Assembly (NCBI GenBank): GCA_020536535.1 | Contig: JAHLWZ010000761.1 | Span: 1 to 64,000, forward strand | DNA: 64,000 bases | Source of the DNA: Pelomyxa schiedti | Lineage: Eukaryota > Protista > Evosea | Reading direction: 5' to 3' | Shown here: positions 47,901 to 55,300 of the stretch, one piece after another | Position numbering within the stretch: the stretch's first letter is position 1 | Layout: the number at the start of each line of letters is the position of its first letter | Notes under the pieces: generated by a model | What the model saw: the letters and a program-made list of their open reading frames with translations, nothing else | Database searches by the model: none | What the model was told of the DNA's origin: nothing | Translations under genes and position numbers: made by a program

Positions 47901-50478
47901 AAGTCACTGTTGGTGCCAAAGTTGAAGGGAAGCAATCCACTTCGTCAAGCTCTCGGAAGAGGAAAGCAGCACACAAGGTTGATGCTGGAATCAAGGTCGG
48001 TGGTGACAAGCCAGCGATTGGGGTCAGTGTGACGGTCGATGGTGGTGTGAAGGTTGATGGCAAGAAGAAGACATCAACATCGTCCTCGAGCTCACGGAAG
48101 AGGAAAGCCGGAATCAAGGTTGACGTCAGCAAACCCGAAGTTGGCATCAAGGTGGCAGTTGACGGAAAGAAGAGCGAAAGCAGCTCATCCAAGAAGAGGA
48201 AACTTCACTTGGAGGCCAGCGGGAAGAAGCCTGACATTCACGTGAACGTGGACGCCAAGGGACCAAAGAAGTCTGGATCTTCGTCGAGTTCAAGCAAGAA
48301 ACACGCCAANNNNNNNNNNNNNNNNNNNNNNNNNNNNNNNNNNNNNNNNNNNNNNNNNNNNNNNNNNNNNNNNNNNNNNNNNNNNNNNNNNNNNNNNNNN
48401 NNNNNNNNNCCAAGAAGAGGAAACTTCACTTGGAGGCCAGCGGGAAGAAGCCTGACATTCACGTGAACGTGGACGCCAAGGGACCAAAGAAGTCTGGATC
48501 TTCGTCGAGTTCAAGCAAGAAACACGCCAAACCGTCTGTCGAGATCAGGGTCGAACCACCCAAAGCAGATGTCAAGGTTGAACCACCAAAGGTGGATGCC
48601 AAGGCGGGTGTCAAAGTTGATGCCAAGGTTGAGGTCAAGAAACCAGGATTCTTTGACAGCATTTTCTCCAAGAAAGAGCCTCCCAAGGTTGAGGTGAAGG
48701 CAGACGTGAAGGTTGACGGGAAGGCAGAAGCCAAGGCAGACGTGAAGGTGGAGATCGAGAAGCCAAAGGTGGGGATCGACCTCAAGGCTGGTGGCAAGAA
48801 ATCGGGATCGTCCTCCTCGAGCTCTCGGAAGAGGAAAGCGGGAATCAAGGTCGAGATCGAGAAACCGAAGTTTGGAGTTGACATCAAGGCCGAAGCAAAG
48901 AAATCAGGCAGCAGCAGCTCTTCATCCAAGAAGAGGAAAGCAGCCGCAGCCGCCAAGGTCGACGCTGGGATCAAGGTTGATGGTGGAATCGCAGTCACAG
49001 GTGACAAACCGAAGATTGACGTTGGCGTGAAGGTTGACTCGCCCAAAAAGAAGAGCACATCCTCGAGCTCTCGCAAGAGGAAAGCTGGTCTCTCCGCGAA
49101 AGTCGAAGTTGAAAAGCCCAAGGTTGATGCCGGTGTCAAGGTTGACGCAAAGAAACCAGAGGCTCCAAAGAGGGGAGGTTTCTTTGGCTTCTTTGGTGGC
49201 TCGGCAGAACCACCAAAGGTTGAAGTCAAGGCTGACGTTCATGCTGGCAAGAAGTCTTCCAGCTCCTCGAAGAAGGGCAAGGCTGCTGTGTCGGTCAAAG
49301 TGGATGCCGGCGTCAAGGCAAGTGCTGACAAGCCAAAGACCGACAGTGCCGACAAGCCCTCAAGACCACCCAAGAAACCCCGTGGCTTTTTCGCGTCCCT
49401 TCTGTTCTCGAGCTCTTCAAGTTCTTCCTCTTCCTCCAGTTACAGTTCTTCCGGTTCCTCAAGTTCTGAAAGCAGCAGAAAGCCTGTTACTACTGAAGTA
49501 AAAGGGAAGGCTTCTGTTAAGGTGGCTACCGAAGTTGATGCAAACAAGAAAGTGAGTGTACCCAAGGCAAGCAAGTCGTCATCCTCAGGGAAGAGAAAGT
49601 TGGGAATAAAGGTTGACCTTGAGAAGCCAAAGGTTGATGCTGGAGTTAAGGTGGATATCAAGACCGGTGCCAAGAAGGATTCTTCCTCCTCTCGGCGCAA
49701 GCACAAATTATCAATGAAAGCTGAAGGTAAAGTGGAAGCACCTGCAGTTGAAGTTAAAGTAAACACTGATACTTCTGTGGGTGTAAAGAAGTCATCGTCT
49801 TCTGGTAAGCGCAAAGCTATAACTGCCGCGAAGGTTGCTGTTGACGTATCAGCAAAGCCTAAAAAGTCCTCCTCCTCCCATAAACGAAAAGGACTAGGAC
49901 TAGGCCTTGCTGCTGTTTTACCCGTGATTAAGAAGTCCTCGTCCTCCTCCAAAAAACGCAAAGCACTTGAGATTACTCCCACGGTAGGCGCAAAAGTAGA
50001 TGTCTCAGTTGAAGCAAAGGCAGATGTTAAACTTGCAATAAAGGAAGATGTGAAAGTCACCAGCAAGCACTCCTCCTCCTCTTCTAGACACCGCAAACTC
50101 GACATAACAGTGAAGGCAGGAAAGAGTTCTTCATCATCAAAGAAAAAATTACATGGTCTACGCCTAGGTTTGGGTATTAAGATTGCCGAACACAACGAAG
50201 CAGTACACAAAGCTGCAGTTGCCACTGAAGATCATCACGAAGCTCACGTTGCAGTTCACGCAGAAGCACCCAAGGTTGAAGTAGAGGTTGCCAAACCTCA
50301 TGTGGAAGCTCACATCACCGCTGGTGTTGATGCCAATGCATCAGTTGGTGTTGGTGCCAAGCTGGAAACTCCGGAAATTAATGTTCATGCCAAGAAGGAC
50401 AAGAAATCGAGCTCGTCCTCTAGCAAGAAGCACAAGAAATCCAAGTCAAGCTCAAGTTCCAGTAAGAAACACCACTAA
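41991..50478 (+). CDS. Giant (~2,800 aa as assembled) Lys/Ser/Val/His repeat protein of unknown family
   Basis: Short first exon MPSSSSSK, then a stop-free frame from ~42209 to the first gap. The same repeat vocabulary (KKSSSSSRKRKA, KVDAGIKV, PHVEV) continues across three N gaps to stop 50476-50478. Confidence 0.88.
46488..46587. other. Assembly gap (100 N)
   Basis: Run of 100 N within the repeat gene; the sequence after the gap re-reads sequence from before it. Confidence 1.
47510..47609. other. Assembly gap (100 N)
   Basis: Run of 100 N within the repeat gene. Confidence 1.
48310..48409. other. Assembly gap (100 N)
   Basis: Run of 100 N; 48410 onward repeats ~48190-48309. Confidence 1.
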
Positions 50479-50585
50479 ATAACAAGCACACCCTTGTCTT
50501 CATAGGTTTGTTTTTTTAGTCCACCAGGTTTATGCTGGTTGGATGGGAATAAATAAAACTTTTTTTTTTTAAAGTTTTCTTGTCT

Positions 50586-53044
50586 TTAGAGGTAACCCAA
50601 TTTCTGAATAGCGAAAAATTGTTCCGGTACCTCAGCCAGTATGGCACTAGCAAAGGCAGCCTCAGGCACACCGCCACATTGTGCGAGTTTGAGAATTTCC
50701 ATGCTGTAGTTTTGGTAAAATGATTATGTTTGCATCCAGGATGCAAAAAAAAAAAGGGGAGGTTTACACACAAGGCAACAAAACGGAAGTTGTCAAATTT
50801 CCGCTCTGGCAAACCGGTGTCAAATTCTGCAATGAAAAGTCCGTAAGTGAATTATAGGGATTTGATTTGCCAAGAATACCTTTCATTAGCTCCCACGGAC
50901 CATCACCCACTCCTACTGTAATGATTGACAGTGGGAAGGAGGAAGCCGCAACAATTTCATCGCGGGTGGGCTTGGGATCGTCAATTTGGCAATGGGAAAT
51001 TCTGTTTGGTTGTTATTTGTAATGGATTGAAGAAATGAGAAATGTAGGGTTCCGTACATAAGAAGGATGTGATAAGTTCTTGTGGCTGCCGTAACAGCAA
51101 TGGCTTGCCTTATAATAGGCGCAAACGAAGTGGGCCCACTGAGTTTAATGTTCGGGAGAATTTCCCCATAACGCTGAAGCACCTCCACATAGCGCTAGTT
51201 GGAAGAGTTAGGGTCAAATTGTGGGAAGATGCAGTGTGTTGTTGTTTCGAAAGAAGAGAGTATGTGGATGCAGAGAACGGTGATGACTATTCAGAAGAGA
51301 GAAGCAATAGTTTGGTGGTTTACCAAAAAATGAAGTGGGGAGATGTTGAACAAAGAATTACATTGCAAGCTCTATTTGGAAGGAAAGGAAACACGGCATG
51401 GTCTCGGGTACTACTATCTCCAAAACCGAACGTCTTTAGAGTGGTGAAATTTATATAACGCAAGTTAACACATTACCGAGACCATCTTGCTGTCATCGAA
51501 CGCCTCAATGGAGCCACCAATGCAGGTAATTACAGCCTGATAGGGATTTGCAATGCCAGGAGTGATTTGATGCAACGACCTGCCAGTAAATGAGGTCTTT
51601 CCCTTCCATTCGTTTTGAGCAGTGAAATCAATGCCGATAATCAACTTGCATGACCGAAGGCCTCTCTGCCGTAATTCCTGCACCACCTTTTGGAAAAATT
51701 CTTTAGAAGCATGTGGATTAAAGAGCTTCGCACCTGCTCCATTGACATATATTTTGGAATTATCGGGTAAAATTTGTATGACTCAGAAGAAAGGAGGCTC
51801 TTTATGAAACCGTTAATAACTGGGTCGTTTTGTTTTCCAAGAAGCTCTAAAATCCTATTCCCATTATTGGTAACCCACTCGATTTGTACTCGGAGAGGCT
51901 GAAGAGATAAGTTAGTGGCAAACCTGATGTTTATTTGTTCTTAACCACCTCCAACGATTCTGGTGTGGCGCCTCGCTTCAGCGCATTAGATGCTGTTGCT
52001 TTCAGTTCGGCGTTTTTCGTGGTCAAAAATGAGAGAGCAGTTACAAGTTCGTCAGGTGAAGTAGCACGCTCTACAAGAGAGTGCAGAACTAAATGCAGAG
52101 GGACAGTAGCCAACAGGGATTTGAAGGTGTTTTCTGAGTCTGTAGACATCTCTTGAAGTTGGGAATTGGGTGTGGTGGATGTGGTACTGGAGCTTGCTTG
52201 AGCAGTTGTAGCAGCGGCAGCGGCAGGTAATGCTGAATAACTTTAGTCTTTTCAGTACTATAGTAGGTAAAAATACACATAAATAACCAAAACACAACAA
52301 TATAATTTATAGATTTTTAAAAACCGCAAAACAACTTTGGGATCCGGTTCTTCTTCTTTTTGAATCCACACGTTCCAGCTTTTGAGACTTCGCAACCTGC
52401 AGCCTTGCTTGTGCCAAGGCCACCTCAGCCTCAAGCTCAGCCACACTCTTGTTCCCCACACCGCTCCCGTTTGATGTCCCACCAGTGGCCGCCGGCGCAG
52501 CCGCGGCAGTTGCATTCGACGCCGAACTTGCAGTTGCACTTGCAGCTGCAGTTGCATTTGTTGCATTTGCATTTGCAGCAGGAACGCCCTCTCCAGAGGT
52601 CGTAGTCGTCGTCGTCGTAGTCCCAGTCCCAGTAGCCGGGGCAGCTGTGGACGTCGGCGTAGTCGAAGCCGGGGTCGCGGCCACGGCCGGGCTCGGCGTC
52701 GTGGCGCCTAGATTGGAGCCCGCAGTTGCACCTGACGTCACGGTAGGAGTCGCCGTGGTCGTCGCAGTTGCAGGCGGCGTCGTGCAGGTAGCCGCGCTCG
52801 CCCCGTTAGACGACTGCGTCCCCGACGCAGCCGTCGCCGCCGCGGCCGCGGCCGCAGCAGCAGCAGCCGCATCGGCTTCGGCCTTCTTCCTTTCTTCCTC
52901 CTTCTTTTCCTCGTCGTCCTCCTCCTCCTTTTCCTCTTCGTCCTCGTCCTCCTTCTCTTCTTCGTCCTCGTCCTTTTCCTCGTCCTCCTCGGCGTCCTCG
53001 TCCTCCGTGCAGGACTTTCGTGCCGTTTGTTGCGTTCGTGGCAT
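50586..53044 (-). CDS. Copine/RGLG-type vWA domain protein with histone H3-like N-terminus and acidic tract; multi-exon
   Basis: vWA: LRSCKLIIGIDFTAQNEWKGKTSFTGRSLH, NPYQAVI, LSGPTSFAPII, YHILL, RKFDNFRFV, AAFASAILAEVPEQFFAIQKLGYL*. Exon 1 (MPRTQQTARKS...) joins by phase-1 intron CAA A|gttgtt...ttcag|CA TTA, then continues in frame to the vWA exons. Confidence 0.8.
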
Positions 53045-53122
53045 GGTTTTTGTTTTGTCTTTTTGATTTCGAAATTGTATTGATTGAAATCTGCTGCTGT
53101 TTCCTCGAATTTTGTTTTTTTT

Positions 53123-55300
53123 TTACAGAGCACCAACAAGTACTGTGATATTGTCTGTGCATTTTGGGTGTCTTAGAGCAGTTGATATTACAGTAGATGC
53201 CATTTCTCGTGCATCAGTCACGCCCCTCAGCACATCGCATACATCTTGTCCACTCATCACATCCCAGAGCTTAGTGCAAGTGTAAGAGTAGGTGTCTAAA
53301 AGGAAGAAAGAGAGCACACCCCATCACTGGCTACAATAACAAACTGATGCTCGGAATTCAAGCACATGGGGGGGCTAATATGGGGTTCCGATATCTGTGG
53401 ATATTTTCAGAAAATGACGAGTTGAATTGAAGCTTGTTTACAATGCCTAAGCCTTCCCGTTTCATGAAGTGTGTACCCAGGGCACGTGCAACTTTGTTCA
53501 CTGTTAGTTTTTTCCTGTATCATTGTTGTGGCAGTTCACCTGCTACACAGCCAGAGATTCTGGTCTGATGGGGTTCAAAATCTTTTGCAGTTTTTACAAG
53601 CCGCTCGTTTTCTTCTGGCGCAGTCACTGGGGGAAAAAAGTGTCAGTTTCCCAATGTTAAAGAATAGGAACCTTTGTGATCAAAGGTCAGCTCAACAGAA
53701 ACACCTCCCTGACTGTGGAAATTAATTATAGTTTATACTTCACACTTGAAGAAGAATACCAAAGGAACGCAGACGAATCACCCACATTGGCTAAAAAGTA
53801 AATAAGAATTGAGGGAACTTGGAAAATATTGTATTAAGCAGAGGAAAAAACCTGCTTGCAAATAACGTCGCCCTTCATAACGCCAAATAATGACCACAGA
53901 ACAAGTACAGCCCTCATATTCCATATCTGAGAGTTGCTGGTCAACCTACAAAACAATGTGTTGATTTCGAGAAATGGCAAAGGAAAAAAAAGATACCTCA
54001 GAGAAACACTTAGTGAGAATATCACTGTAATCAGGTTTCGGTGAGTCACTAGTAATCATTGTGTGCAGGTGCTAGTGATAGGTTTGTGATACATTTGTTG
54101 TTTTTTTGTGGGAGGCAAACTGGAGCAAATTTGGCCTTGGCTGCAAGGGAGGCGCCGGTTCCTGTTTTAGTGTCAGATAGAACCAGGTTTTTAAAATTTG
54201 GCTGCCTGCAAATCCATCAAAAACACCAAGAAAAGCGAGGTCAGAATTTCCTTGCCAGGGGAATTCAAAGTAGTGCATATCCTGCCAAATTAAGAATTTA
54301 AAAGAAATAATAATCACAACCTCCATTTCGAGTTTTCCAGAGGGAAATGTTGGTTTCTTCTTTTGCTTTTTTAATCCAGCTAGGTTCATGTTCTCACAGC
54401 AATGAATAGTTTTCAAAAGTGGACAATTGGGGTCCTTGCTGGGGGTAAGGGTGAAGGAAGTCTAAAAAAAAGGGGTAACCTCTGCAGAGGGAATTGTAAA
54501 CTGAACAAGTGAAGTTTCAGTGGAGCTGACAGAGGGGAGTGTCACATCCTGCACATAGTGTCACAGTGGTTGAGTTTGGGATGGCTGTACCAGACCAGCG
54601 GCTAAATCCGCCAGATTCAAAGATTCAACATCCAACTTGACTTTATCCTGGGACTGTGCTACAACTTTATTTGAGCAAACTCAGCAGGGTGGTTGTAGTT
54701 TTTCCGCATTAACATACATGGGTCAGAAACTGGCAAAATCAGACCGCCCCCAGCCGTCGTGGTGGTAGCAGTACTTTGCAGTTGTTGCAACTGCTGTGCC
54801 ATTTGGATTTGCTGCAGTTGCATTTGGATTTGGTTCGTCAGCAGCCTATTTTCAGCCCGCGACTGCTCCAGCTGCTCGCGCGCGGCTCTGAGGTCCTCCA
54901 GCGCCCCCCTCAGCGTCGCCTCGCGGTCGCGCAGCTCCCGCGTGGCCCGGTCGCGCTCGCCCGCCGCGCCGTCGCGCTCCCTGGCCGCCGCCTCGCACGC
55001 GGGGCACCCACCCGCCTGCGCCTTCTTCAGCTCCGCCGTCGCCGCGTCGCGGTCGCGGGCGAGCCCCGCGGCGCGCTCCCTCGCGGCTTCCGCCTCGGCG
55101 CGCAGCTGCTCCACGTGGGCCTCGCTGTGGGCCAGCCGCTCCCGCAGGCTCTGGATCTCCGCCGCCGCGGCCTCCTCCCCGGCCGCTGGCCTCCCGCGCC
55201 CATCGCTCTCCATCGGCCCCGACGCCTCCGGGGGCGACCGCAGCAGCGGCTTCGCTTCGCTCGTCGGCTCCGACGCCCACGTCGAGCACCACCCCCCCAT
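53123..55300 (-). CDS. PP2C (PPM) protein phosphatase with N-terminal lipidation motif and coiled coil; multi-exon
   Basis: KLEME|D, LGVFDGFAG, FVIVASDG|LWDVMS, CTDNITVLV. Start MGGWCSTW. Confidence 0.9.

Follow-up and report, generated by a model that had tools for sequence, protein, structure and literature searches.

We find that the minus strand of a Pelomyxa schiedti contig carries an expressed RGLG/copine-type vWA protein, which we read, with a probability of roughly 0.55, as a nuclear coiled-coil, probably metal-independent adaptor whose H3-like basic N-terminus is fortuitous. The window (the whole stretch of DNA that was analysed) is 64 kb long. The protein starts M-PRTQQTARKS, and its resemblance to the histone H3 tail is most probably fortuitous, at most a relic, and not an evolved mimic; if fortuitous, which we hold to be more likely, the gene is simply a known domain with a low-complexity, lineage-specific extension of an ordinary kind. 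The gene defines a small, fast-evolving RGLG/copine-type clade, previously unnoticed, in which the metal site has been lost and a helical fore-domain gained. Its members so far are the window protein and one from the archamoeba Mastigella eilhardi (EP01105_P027168, 487 aa, here P0003), and it bears on partner binding by copine-type vWA domains.

The gene and its transcript

The gene is real, expressed and spliced. It comprises nine minus-strand exons between 53044 and 50586, encoding, from the ATG at 53044, a 623-aa protein with a calculated mass of roughly 65 kDa. The eight introns are all GT..AG and 43-167 nt long, and each is present as a joint in single-cell RNA contigs. The features, in the order of the transcript, are:

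53045..53122 (-): A-rich spacer, 78 nt, without ATG, between the stop of a PP2C-like gene (TAA 53125-53123) and ATG 53044
53012..53044 (-): start codon and H3-like decapeptide M-PRTQQTARKS, 8/10 to ARTKQTARKS (A1P, K4Q)
52880..53011 (-): acidic tract, residues 12-55, 32 D/E and 8 K/R
52451..52879 (-): Ala/Thr/Ser/Gly/Pro low-complexity tract, about residues 56-198; RNA contigs reach up to 52767
52336..52450 (-): helix-prone, heptad-like segment KSVAELEAEVALAQARLQVAKSQKLERV, then KRRR and the end of exon 1; in RNA contigs
52233..52335 (-): intron 1, 103 nt, GT..AG; RNA runs X1 and X2 show the joint 52232/52336
51734..52232 (-): exons 2 and 3 (52232-51949, 51898-51734); Ala/Ser/Thr linker and helical region, residues 266-386
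50586..51686 (-): exons 4-9, copine/RGLG-type vWA with degenerate MIDAS (Pfam Copine, 6k88 alignment, motif survey, introns in RNA)
51629-51615 (-): MIDAS motif 1, DFTAQ against DxTxS (Ser to Gln)
51137-51123 (-): MIDAS Thr motif, GPTSF (Thr kept)
51059-50986 (-): MIDAS Asp motif, IISHCQ (Asp to His), spanning intron 6

Much of the layout proposed in the first-pass annotation is borne out. The H3-tail identity in the same register is read directly from the minus strand (53044-53012, ATG CCA CGA ACG CAA CAA ACG GCA CGA AAG TCC = MPRTQQTARKS), with R2, T3 and Q5-S10 matching and A1P as one of the two mismatches; the other is the claimed replacement of K4, where Gln is found. The acidic tract, put at about 40 Glu/Asp residues, measures 44 aa with 32/44 D/E, the Ala/Thr linker has A, T, S, G or P at 127/150 positions over residues 56-205, and the NLS-like KRRR lies at residues 229-232 (52360-52349). 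The protein was said to be without a histone fold and without C2 or RING, and indeed Pfam gives no histone domain, the sequence past S10 being acidic low complexity, and no match to C2 or RING, C2 being absent from the exon 1-3 translations. To judge from its heptads, the KSVAELEAEVALAQARLQVAKSQKLERV segment is probably a coiled coil. As for the junction of exon 1 with the vWA, which the annotation wished to see confirmed, exon 1 is spliced to the vWA exons, the intron 1 joint occurring in two RNA runs with a shorter side of 32 and 54 nt.

Upstream, the neighbour is a PP2C-like gene in frame with ATG 53044 (Pfam PP2C on 53126-53317), whose RNA contigs end at 53135. An in-frame TAA stands 26 codons before ATG 53044. 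The A-rich spacer between the two genes must contain the promoter and the 5' UTR. Stop-codon reassignment or readthrough from the PP2C-like gene was considered and rejected, because the vWA gene's own TAA is at the exact C-terminus of its homologs and because of where the PP2C contigs end. This TAA (50588-50586) follows ...KLGYL directly after the vWA domain. A search of the whole window with Rfam gives no match.

Codons 1-92 and the 5' UTR are without transcript cover, 52768-53126 being in no RNA contig from the three single-cell RNA runs. At 52767 and 52661, two contigs break off in loose letters that match the SMART template-switch oligo in reverse complement and mark cDNA 5' ends. It could be argued from this that the H3-like codons are untranslated, with transcription starting inside exon 1 and the protein starting elsewhere (at a non-AUG codon, or at Met265 in exon 2), all the more as low-complexity DNA is open in several frames, which makes ORF length weak evidence. 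The two cDNA ends are, however, 106 nt apart, as expected for RT stalling in GC-rich repeats, while repeats of acidic codons are hard to assemble and part of the contigs had been filtered out. Translation from Met265 would put a leader of >500 nt, with out-of-frame ATGs from 52572, ahead of the coding sequence. Past the upstream gene, no ATG comes before the one at 53044, and exon 1 has no other in frame. Moreover, ahead of its helical region P0003 has 148 coding residues, including a coiled coil, which correspond to the 3' part of exon 1. Of the three RNA/DNA differences in exon 1, two are synonymous, and the 6-nt length difference, by which DNA run X4 departs from the window at 52839, is in frame. 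We rate an untranslated start as very unlikely.

The vWA domain and the helical region

The match to Copine PF07002 (E 2.5e-51, 174.7 bits where the gathering score is 27) covers profile positions 1-212 of 218, and the best PDB sequence match of exon 4 is to RGLG1/2/5 (RGLG1 6k88, E 5e-14). The vWA, described earlier as complete, is so in its fold but not in its metal site. In RGLG1 the MIDAS is formed by DxTxS162-166, T258 and D286 (PMC7155146). An intact set of DxTxS, Thr and Asp is absent from the window protein. By comparison, DxTxS is found in ~115/120 word-search homologs and xDG in 104/104 of those with a readable second motif; among 268 proteins only two exceptions, both unrelated, occur besides the window protein and P0003. 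The vWA is probably metal-independent.

The sole ortholog found is P0003, the sister of the window protein in the tree (support 100/91), with 44% identity over the helical region and vWA. Both proteins have a short basic N-terminus, an acidic run and a coiled coil, and P0003 has the same MIDAS losses (DFSKA and VTHGH). It differs in lacking the Ala/Thr tract, in its much shorter acidic run and longer coiled coil, and in the additional loss of the MIDAS Thr (GPLSF). The clade is marked by a helical region before the vWA, an extension that runs from basic to acidic to coiled coil, and the loss of two MIDAS ligands, Ser (now Gln or Ala) and Asp (now His). A single ortholog, lying at ~two substitutions per site from the window protein in the tree, is a weak test of conservation.

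The small helical domain that had been placed ahead of the vWA is found at residues 266-386 and has its counterpart in P0003, which shares it over residues 287-386 of the gene model; in the AF2 model of P0003 it consists of three long helices (pLDDT 55-75). Beyond P0003, an exhaustive HMMER search with P0003:140-487 gives the helical region no match among 1.84e9 representatives. A search with the C-terminal 359 aa, in a collection that does not contain the window's own protein, returns 1295 copine-vWA matches, of which P0003 alone spans the helical region. The top score of this region in the ESM Atlas (0.52) is meaningless, and with exons 2 and 3 or the N-terminus of P0003 as query Pfam gives only sub-threshold noise. 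The exon-1 ORF (245 aa) has no match at E<=0.01 among 5.8e9 proteins, in a search limited by a length filter of 135-429 aa and by low-complexity words. The remark that this architecture is known from no described protein agrees with these searches, in which the helical region is seen again in P0003 only, and with a literature search that finds no match to the peptide strings.

The H3-like peptide: chance, relic or mimic

The first question is how often such a peptide arises by chance. The probability per protein of a match of at least 8/10 is ~6e-9 under average amino-acid composition and ~5e-6 under a basic, Thr/Ser-rich one. With millions of proteins scanned, ~0.1-0.8 chance matches are expected, so that a chance match is plausible at this scale.

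The second is whether relatives carry it. An ortholog keeping both motif and vWA had been called for, and P0003 speaks against it: it begins MSTRSKRARGEDMEQEEE, in which only A7 and R8 of the decapeptide are kept (Met uncounted). Its start, MSTRSKRARGEDMEQEEEQE, then runs into the coiled coil, and the N-terminus as a whole (MSTRSKRARGED) is NLS-like, basic and then acidic, and not H3-like, with H3 identity limited to A7-R8. Because P0003 is without an H3-like start, the decapeptide is, as far as these sequences go, lineage-specific. It is on 0/268 copine-vWA relatives.

Could the peptide be a piece of a histone gene? A rearrangement would have taken the first ~33 nt, perhaps with promoter and 5' UTR, from an H3 gene or pseudogene and joined them to an acidic extension that was already there, the peptide being tolerated and not selected for mimicry. 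The identity to H3 breaks off sharply past S10, where acidic low complexity begins, and A1P and K4Q are each reachable by one base change (GCN to CCN, AAR to CAR). JGI metagenome contigs scanned for DNA encoding MPRTQQTARKS give a single match, in an unrelated contig (L001) that reads MPRTQQTARKSTCGYIPPRVA*, with exactly the same two substitutions, H3-like sequence to about residue 21 and an in-frame stop; past the stop an acidic stretch follows in the same frame, and the remainder is without a Pfam domain. L001 is an H3-derived fragment. The 64-kb window, however, has no other H3 motif or histone gene, and P0003 already has a basic peptide at the same place, which makes drift simpler. We regard capture from an H3 gene as decidedly improbable.

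A functional H3 tail mimic would be less likely than a fortuitous resemblance, and on present sequences we consider it unlikely. In such a case PRTQQTARKS, its Met removed, would be a target for H3K9 methyltransferases, HP1-type chromodomains or S10 kinases, and would tether the vWA adaptor to the heterochromatin machinery or titrate that machinery; position 4 would not be methylatable, and the acidic tract may shield the peptide or act in histone binding. A match of 8/10 in exact register, with the whole Q5-S10 stretch intact, favours mimicry and counts against a fortuitous origin. T6-A7-R8-K9-S10 is identical to H3 (T6, A7 and S10 native), with the A-R-K-S/T core and R at -1 present. Mimics of the ARKS/ARKT kind are established in G9a, in ADNP, on which there is a paper, and in SETDB1, whose histone-mimic motifs are the subject of a preprint. 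The M-P-R start agrees with iM-Z-R-x-K in that the initiator Met is followed by a small residue and position 2 is Arg; Pro is in the residue set that permits Met removal, and VRK1 and other H3 N-terminal mimicry proteins (H3TMs) serve as precedent (PMC8166343), which again counts against chance, as does the fit of the acidic tract and KRRR to a possible chromatin-associated protein. An H3 variant with ~94% identity to animal H3.3 is known from a free-living archamoeba (PMC2939574), so the canonical tail is probably present in the lineage.

Weighed against this are the absence of the decapeptide from P0003 and from the copine-vWA relatives, the lack of the H3-like codons in any RNA contig, and the plausibility of chance at the scale of the scan. 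R8, which is present, is indispensable for SUV39H and G9a; human SUV39H1/2, however, read K4 and T11/G12 besides RKS (PMC8303541), and these are Q, C and T in the window protein. The SUV39H profiles ask for K/R at -5, small A/G/S/T at +2 and G/K/Q at +3 (PMC8303541), and with Q at -5, C at +2 and T at +3 the peptide is off the profiles of SUV39H1/2, a comparison that holds for the human enzymes only.

If the peptide were functional, histone mimicry would reach a free-living protist, and no endogenous mimic of the H3 tail known so far would be more complete. The protein would then be a natural "K4Q, tail-only" stand-in for H3 on a vWA interaction module, and a useful handle on H3K9/S10 reader titration. 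Histone mimicry is so far, to our knowledge, mainly from animal chromatin proteins and pathogens, and we know of no described endogenous H3 mimic that comes near 8/10 in exact N-terminal register including Q5-S10. The fuller proposal, that a non-histone protein with a mature N-terminus equal to H3 2-3 and 5-10 (K4Q) acts as a K9/S10-modifiable bait, coupling a MIDAS-less vWA adaptor to the heterochromatin/mitotic-kinase machinery or buffering it, is if anything more doubtful than mimicry as such.

In the fortuitous reading that we prefer, PRTQQTARKS would be the lineage-specific form of the short basic peptide heading the extension, probably with no mimic function. The protein may be imported into the nucleus via KRRR and self-associate through the coiled coil, the probably metal-independent vWA face would act as a protein-binding adaptor, and the long acidic and Ala/Thr tracts would be disordered spacers.

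Comparison with known systems

The H3TMs (VRK1, PCLAF, BCL11A/B, SALL, FOG) have M-Z-R-x-K as their defining motif; among them, human VRK1 has been validated as a mimic of the H3 N-terminus and binds PHD fingers (PMC8166343). The window protein resembles them in having its similarity at the extreme N-terminus after Met removal, with R2 kept, and VRK1 likewise starts M-P-R. Their known interactions (PHD fingers, NuRD) need K4, however, whereas the Lys at position 4 of iM-Z-R-x-K is absent here, with Gln instead; on the other hand, the H3 similarity of the window protein runs to residue 10, as in no H3TM so far. With the internal H3K9 mimics (the G9a/GLP automethylation site, SETDB1, ADNP, H1.4 K26) the peptide shares the A-R-K-S core after T/Q. 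Those motifs are internal, with methylation and HP1 binding shown, whereas the candidate motif of the window protein is N-terminal, and its +2/+3 residues are not as in H3.

On the side of the vWA, the copines/BONZAI (BON1, PDB 6kxk) are of the same Pfam family and form the second tier of structural matches to the P0003 model, with ~29% identity to P0003 against 46% for RGLG; unlike them, the window protein is without C2. In the P0003 model the vWA (pLDDT >90) has a Rossmann-like fold, and the best structural match is to RGLG1/2/5 (6k8a, TM 0.84, rmsd 1.4, 46% identity). The vWA of Arabidopsis RGLG1/2/5 (PDB 6k88, 8hmg, 8xt5) is, like that of the window protein, copine-type PF07002, but the window protein has neither their RING nor their N-myristoylation start (MG...). 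At the position of RGLG1 D207, in our own numbering of the 6k88 alignment, the window protein has Ser, and we take D207 to be a Ca-site (NCBS) residue on the same numbering. Compared with RGLG1, Ser166 is replaced by Gln and Asp286 by His, and the N-terminal extension is wholly different.

Gene model and transcripts

We begin by considering the gene on the minus strand. From ATG 53044 the codons CCA CGA ACG CAA CAA ACG GCA CGA AAG TCC encode M-PRTQQTARKS, and the reading frame stays open for 709 nt, up to the GT donor at 52335. The assembled model has 9 exons, eight GT..AG introns of 43-167 nt and a product of 623 aa.

Exons of the assembled model
53044-52336, minus, exon 1
52232-51949, minus, exon 2
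51898-51734, minus, exon 3
51686-51477, minus, exon 4
51433-51362, minus, exon 5
51194-51058, minus, exon 6
51001-50880, minus, exon 7
50826-50772, minus, exon 8
50703-50586, minus, exon 9

Segments of the protein (residues)
1-11, H3-like peptide
12-55, acidic tract with 32 D/E
56-about 198, Ala/Thr/Ser/Gly/Pro tract
199-232, helix-prone, heptad-like segment with terminal KRRR
241-265, Ala/Ser/Thr linker
266-386, helical region
386-623, vWA domain

The acidic tract, Ala/Thr tract, KRRR and helical region described in the first-pass annotation are all located by segment analysis of this model. Residues 199-232 are probably a coiled coil, judging by eye and from the coiled coil of P0003, the Mastigella eilhardi ortholog.

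Contigs of three single-cell RNA runs and one DNA run were aligned over 50400-53400, and eight of eight introns are present as joints in the RNA contigs. The proposed connection between exon 1 and the vWA-coding exons is borne out by joint 52232/52336, found in two RNA runs, where its shorter flank measures 32 and 54 nt; because these contigs join exon 1 to exon 2, a separate exon 1 transcript is ruled out. The first 92 codons lie outside RNA contig coverage. The contigs reach only 52767, 52728 and 52661 on the 5' side, and none in the three RNA runs covers 52768-53126, where DNA depth is normal. Two of them carry loose ends, CCCATGTAC..., at 52661 and 52767 inside exon 1, which we take to be the reverse complement of the SMART template-switch oligo, i.e., cDNA 5' ends. 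Lying 106 nt apart in GC-rich repeats, these ends are better explained by stalling of the reverse transcriptase than by a defined start site.

The lack of direct RNA support for those 92 codons would suit an N-terminus that is not translated, H3-like codons included, but we consider this quite improbable. The PP2C-like gene directly upstream (53123-54416, minus strand) already stops at 53125-53123 with a TAA in the same reading frame, 78 nt (26 codons) from ATG 53044, and the spacer contains no ATG. Exon 1 has no other ATG in this frame, and the protein has no further Met before residue 265; starting there would mean a long leader containing out-of-frame ATGs from 52572 on. P0003 also has 148 coding residues, coiled coil included, before its helical region. 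Finally, of three RNA/DNA differences in exon 1, those at 52412 and 52550 are synonymous and the one at 52588 changes Gly to Ser, and the 6 nt by which the DNA run is shorter than the window at 52839, within poly-Ala codons, are an in-frame length polymorphism. Since several frames are open in the low-complexity DNA of exon 1, the length of an ORF says little by itself. Readthrough from the PP2C-like ORF, which lies in frame, was rejected: the TAA of our gene falls exactly at the end of its homologs, which makes TAA a true stop codon in this genome.

The PP2C-like gene has a Pfam PP2C match of 20.6 bits on its last exon (53126-53317), an FLGVFDGFAG motif near 54200 and a 50-nt GT..AG intron (53269-53320) confirmed by RNA contigs. 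Both of its RNA contigs end exactly at 53135, 10 nt short of the stop codon and of a genomic A10 run, which may reflect poly(A) or low-complexity trimming. On the other side, a convergent plus-strand gene (48430-50478) encodes a Ser/Lys-rich repeat protein with poly-Ser and KKRK modules; the two stops are only 108 nt apart, a sign of a very compact genome at this point.

Resemblance to the histone H3 tail

The 8/10 identity to H3 ARTKQTARKS, in register, holds: R2, T3 and Q5-S10 are kept (H3 numbering without the initiator Met), with Pro in place of A1 and Gln in place of K4. The similarity stops at S10, after which the protein reads C-T-E-D versus T-G-G-K in H3. The resemblance is confirmed, and RNA shows the link of the H3-like exon to the vWA domain. 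The evidence on its functional reading leans against mimicry, and a true H3K9/S10 mimic, as the first-pass annotation proposed, is unlikely. In its favor, the match is long, sits at the true N-terminus and leaves intact Q5-S10, the segment held by HP1 chromodomains. It includes R8, indispensable for SUV39H1/2 and G9a (PMC8303541), and a Pro next to the initiator Met allows the Met to be removed (PMC8166343). H3 mimicry at the N-terminus is an established idea: human H3 N-terminal mimicry proteins (H3TMs) have iM-Z-R-x-K as their defining pattern, and binding of VRK1 to PHD fingers has been shown (PMC8166343). A canonical H3 tail probably exists in this lineage too, because one free-living archamoeba has an H3 that shares about 94% identity with the H3.3 of animals (PMC2939574).

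Against mimicry, the decapeptide is not conserved: the only ortholog, P0003, starts MSTRSKRARGEDMEQEEEQE, where only A7-R8 coincide with H3, in the same basic, then acidic, then coiled-coil layout, and 0 of 268 related vWA proteins have an H3-like start. The K4 that defines H3TMs is Gln here; SUV39H1 prefers K4, and SUV39H1/2 read T11 and G12 (PMC8303541), which are Cys and Thr in our protein. The chance of a match of at least 8/10 is 6e-9 per protein with average composition and 5e-6 if the N-terminus is already basic and Thr/Ser-rich, like that of P0003; over several million proteins, an estimated 0.1-0.8 chance matches are expected.

The peptide might also, with slight probability, be a captured fragment of H3 that has no mimic function. 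When JGI metagenome contigs were scanned for DNA that encodes MPRTQQTARKS exactly, one contig came up, Ga0153959_1011805, which is unrelated to our gene and (414-1244) reads MPRTQQTARKSTCGYIPPRVA*. It goes on H3-like (STCGYIPPRVA) until a TAG in frame; beyond this stop, without a change of frame, come an acidic stretch and an ORF of 165 aa in which Pfam recognizes no domain. This contig resembles an H3 5' fragment that was captured or has decayed, and it shows that H3 fragments with exactly these two single-base substitutions occur.

The vWA domain compared with RGLG proteins

Of the "complete copine-type vWA", the fold stands. Copine PF07002 is the only Pfam match of note (E 2.5e-51, profile 1-212/218), with no C2, RING or histone fold, as had been claimed; exon 4 aligns to the vWA structures of RGLG1, RGLG2 and RGLG5 (E 5e-14). 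A word-index search finds 1295 copine-vWA proteins at identities up to about 55%, mostly stand-alone vWA proteins of 260-300 aa from protists, many amoebozoan. Only one covers the region before the vWA domain, P0003 (487 aa, EukProt EP01105), 44% identical over model residues 287-623. None of 4717 vWA relatives matches the helical region in an exhaustive HMMER search (query P0003:140-487, 1.84e9 cluster representatives). A maximum-likelihood tree built on 47 vWA domains places the two proteins as sisters (100/91), on branches of about 1 change per site each; they form a small clade with two proteins known so far. This sister from Mastigella and the numerous amoebozoan matches point to an amoebozoan source of the DNA, probably an archamoeba. 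The AlphaFold2 model of P0003:140-487 (mean pLDDT 86) has a confident vWA domain preceded by three long helices (pLDDT 55-75), and its best structural matches are RGLG1/2 (TM 0.84), then BON1.

The metal site (MIDAS) is the part of the claim that fails. Our protein has DFTAQ (51615-51629) and IISHCQ (50986-51059), and P0003 has DFSKA and VTHGH; DxTxS is kept in about 115 of 120 word-search homologs, and xDG in all 104 with a readable second motif. The RGLG1 motif AFDEDN, which by our numbering includes the Ca-site Asp207, aligns with AFDDSK, Ser replacing Asp. In RGLG1 the MIDAS consists of DxTxS(162-166), T258 and D286 (PMC7155146). Two of these ligands are lost in both proteins (Ser to Gln/Ala, Asp to His), a shared loss that sets them apart as an RGLG-type vWA clade with a degenerate MIDAS.

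We favor, with a probability of about 0.55, a nuclear, coiled-coil vWA adaptor, probably metal-independent, from a small clade of archamoeba type, whose basic N-terminal peptide would merely happen to resemble H3. While its adjacency may be coincidence, the PP2C-like neighbor suggests a candidate partner for this adaptor, by analogy with Arabidopsis, where the RGLG1/5 vWA domain binds PP2CA (PMC7155146).
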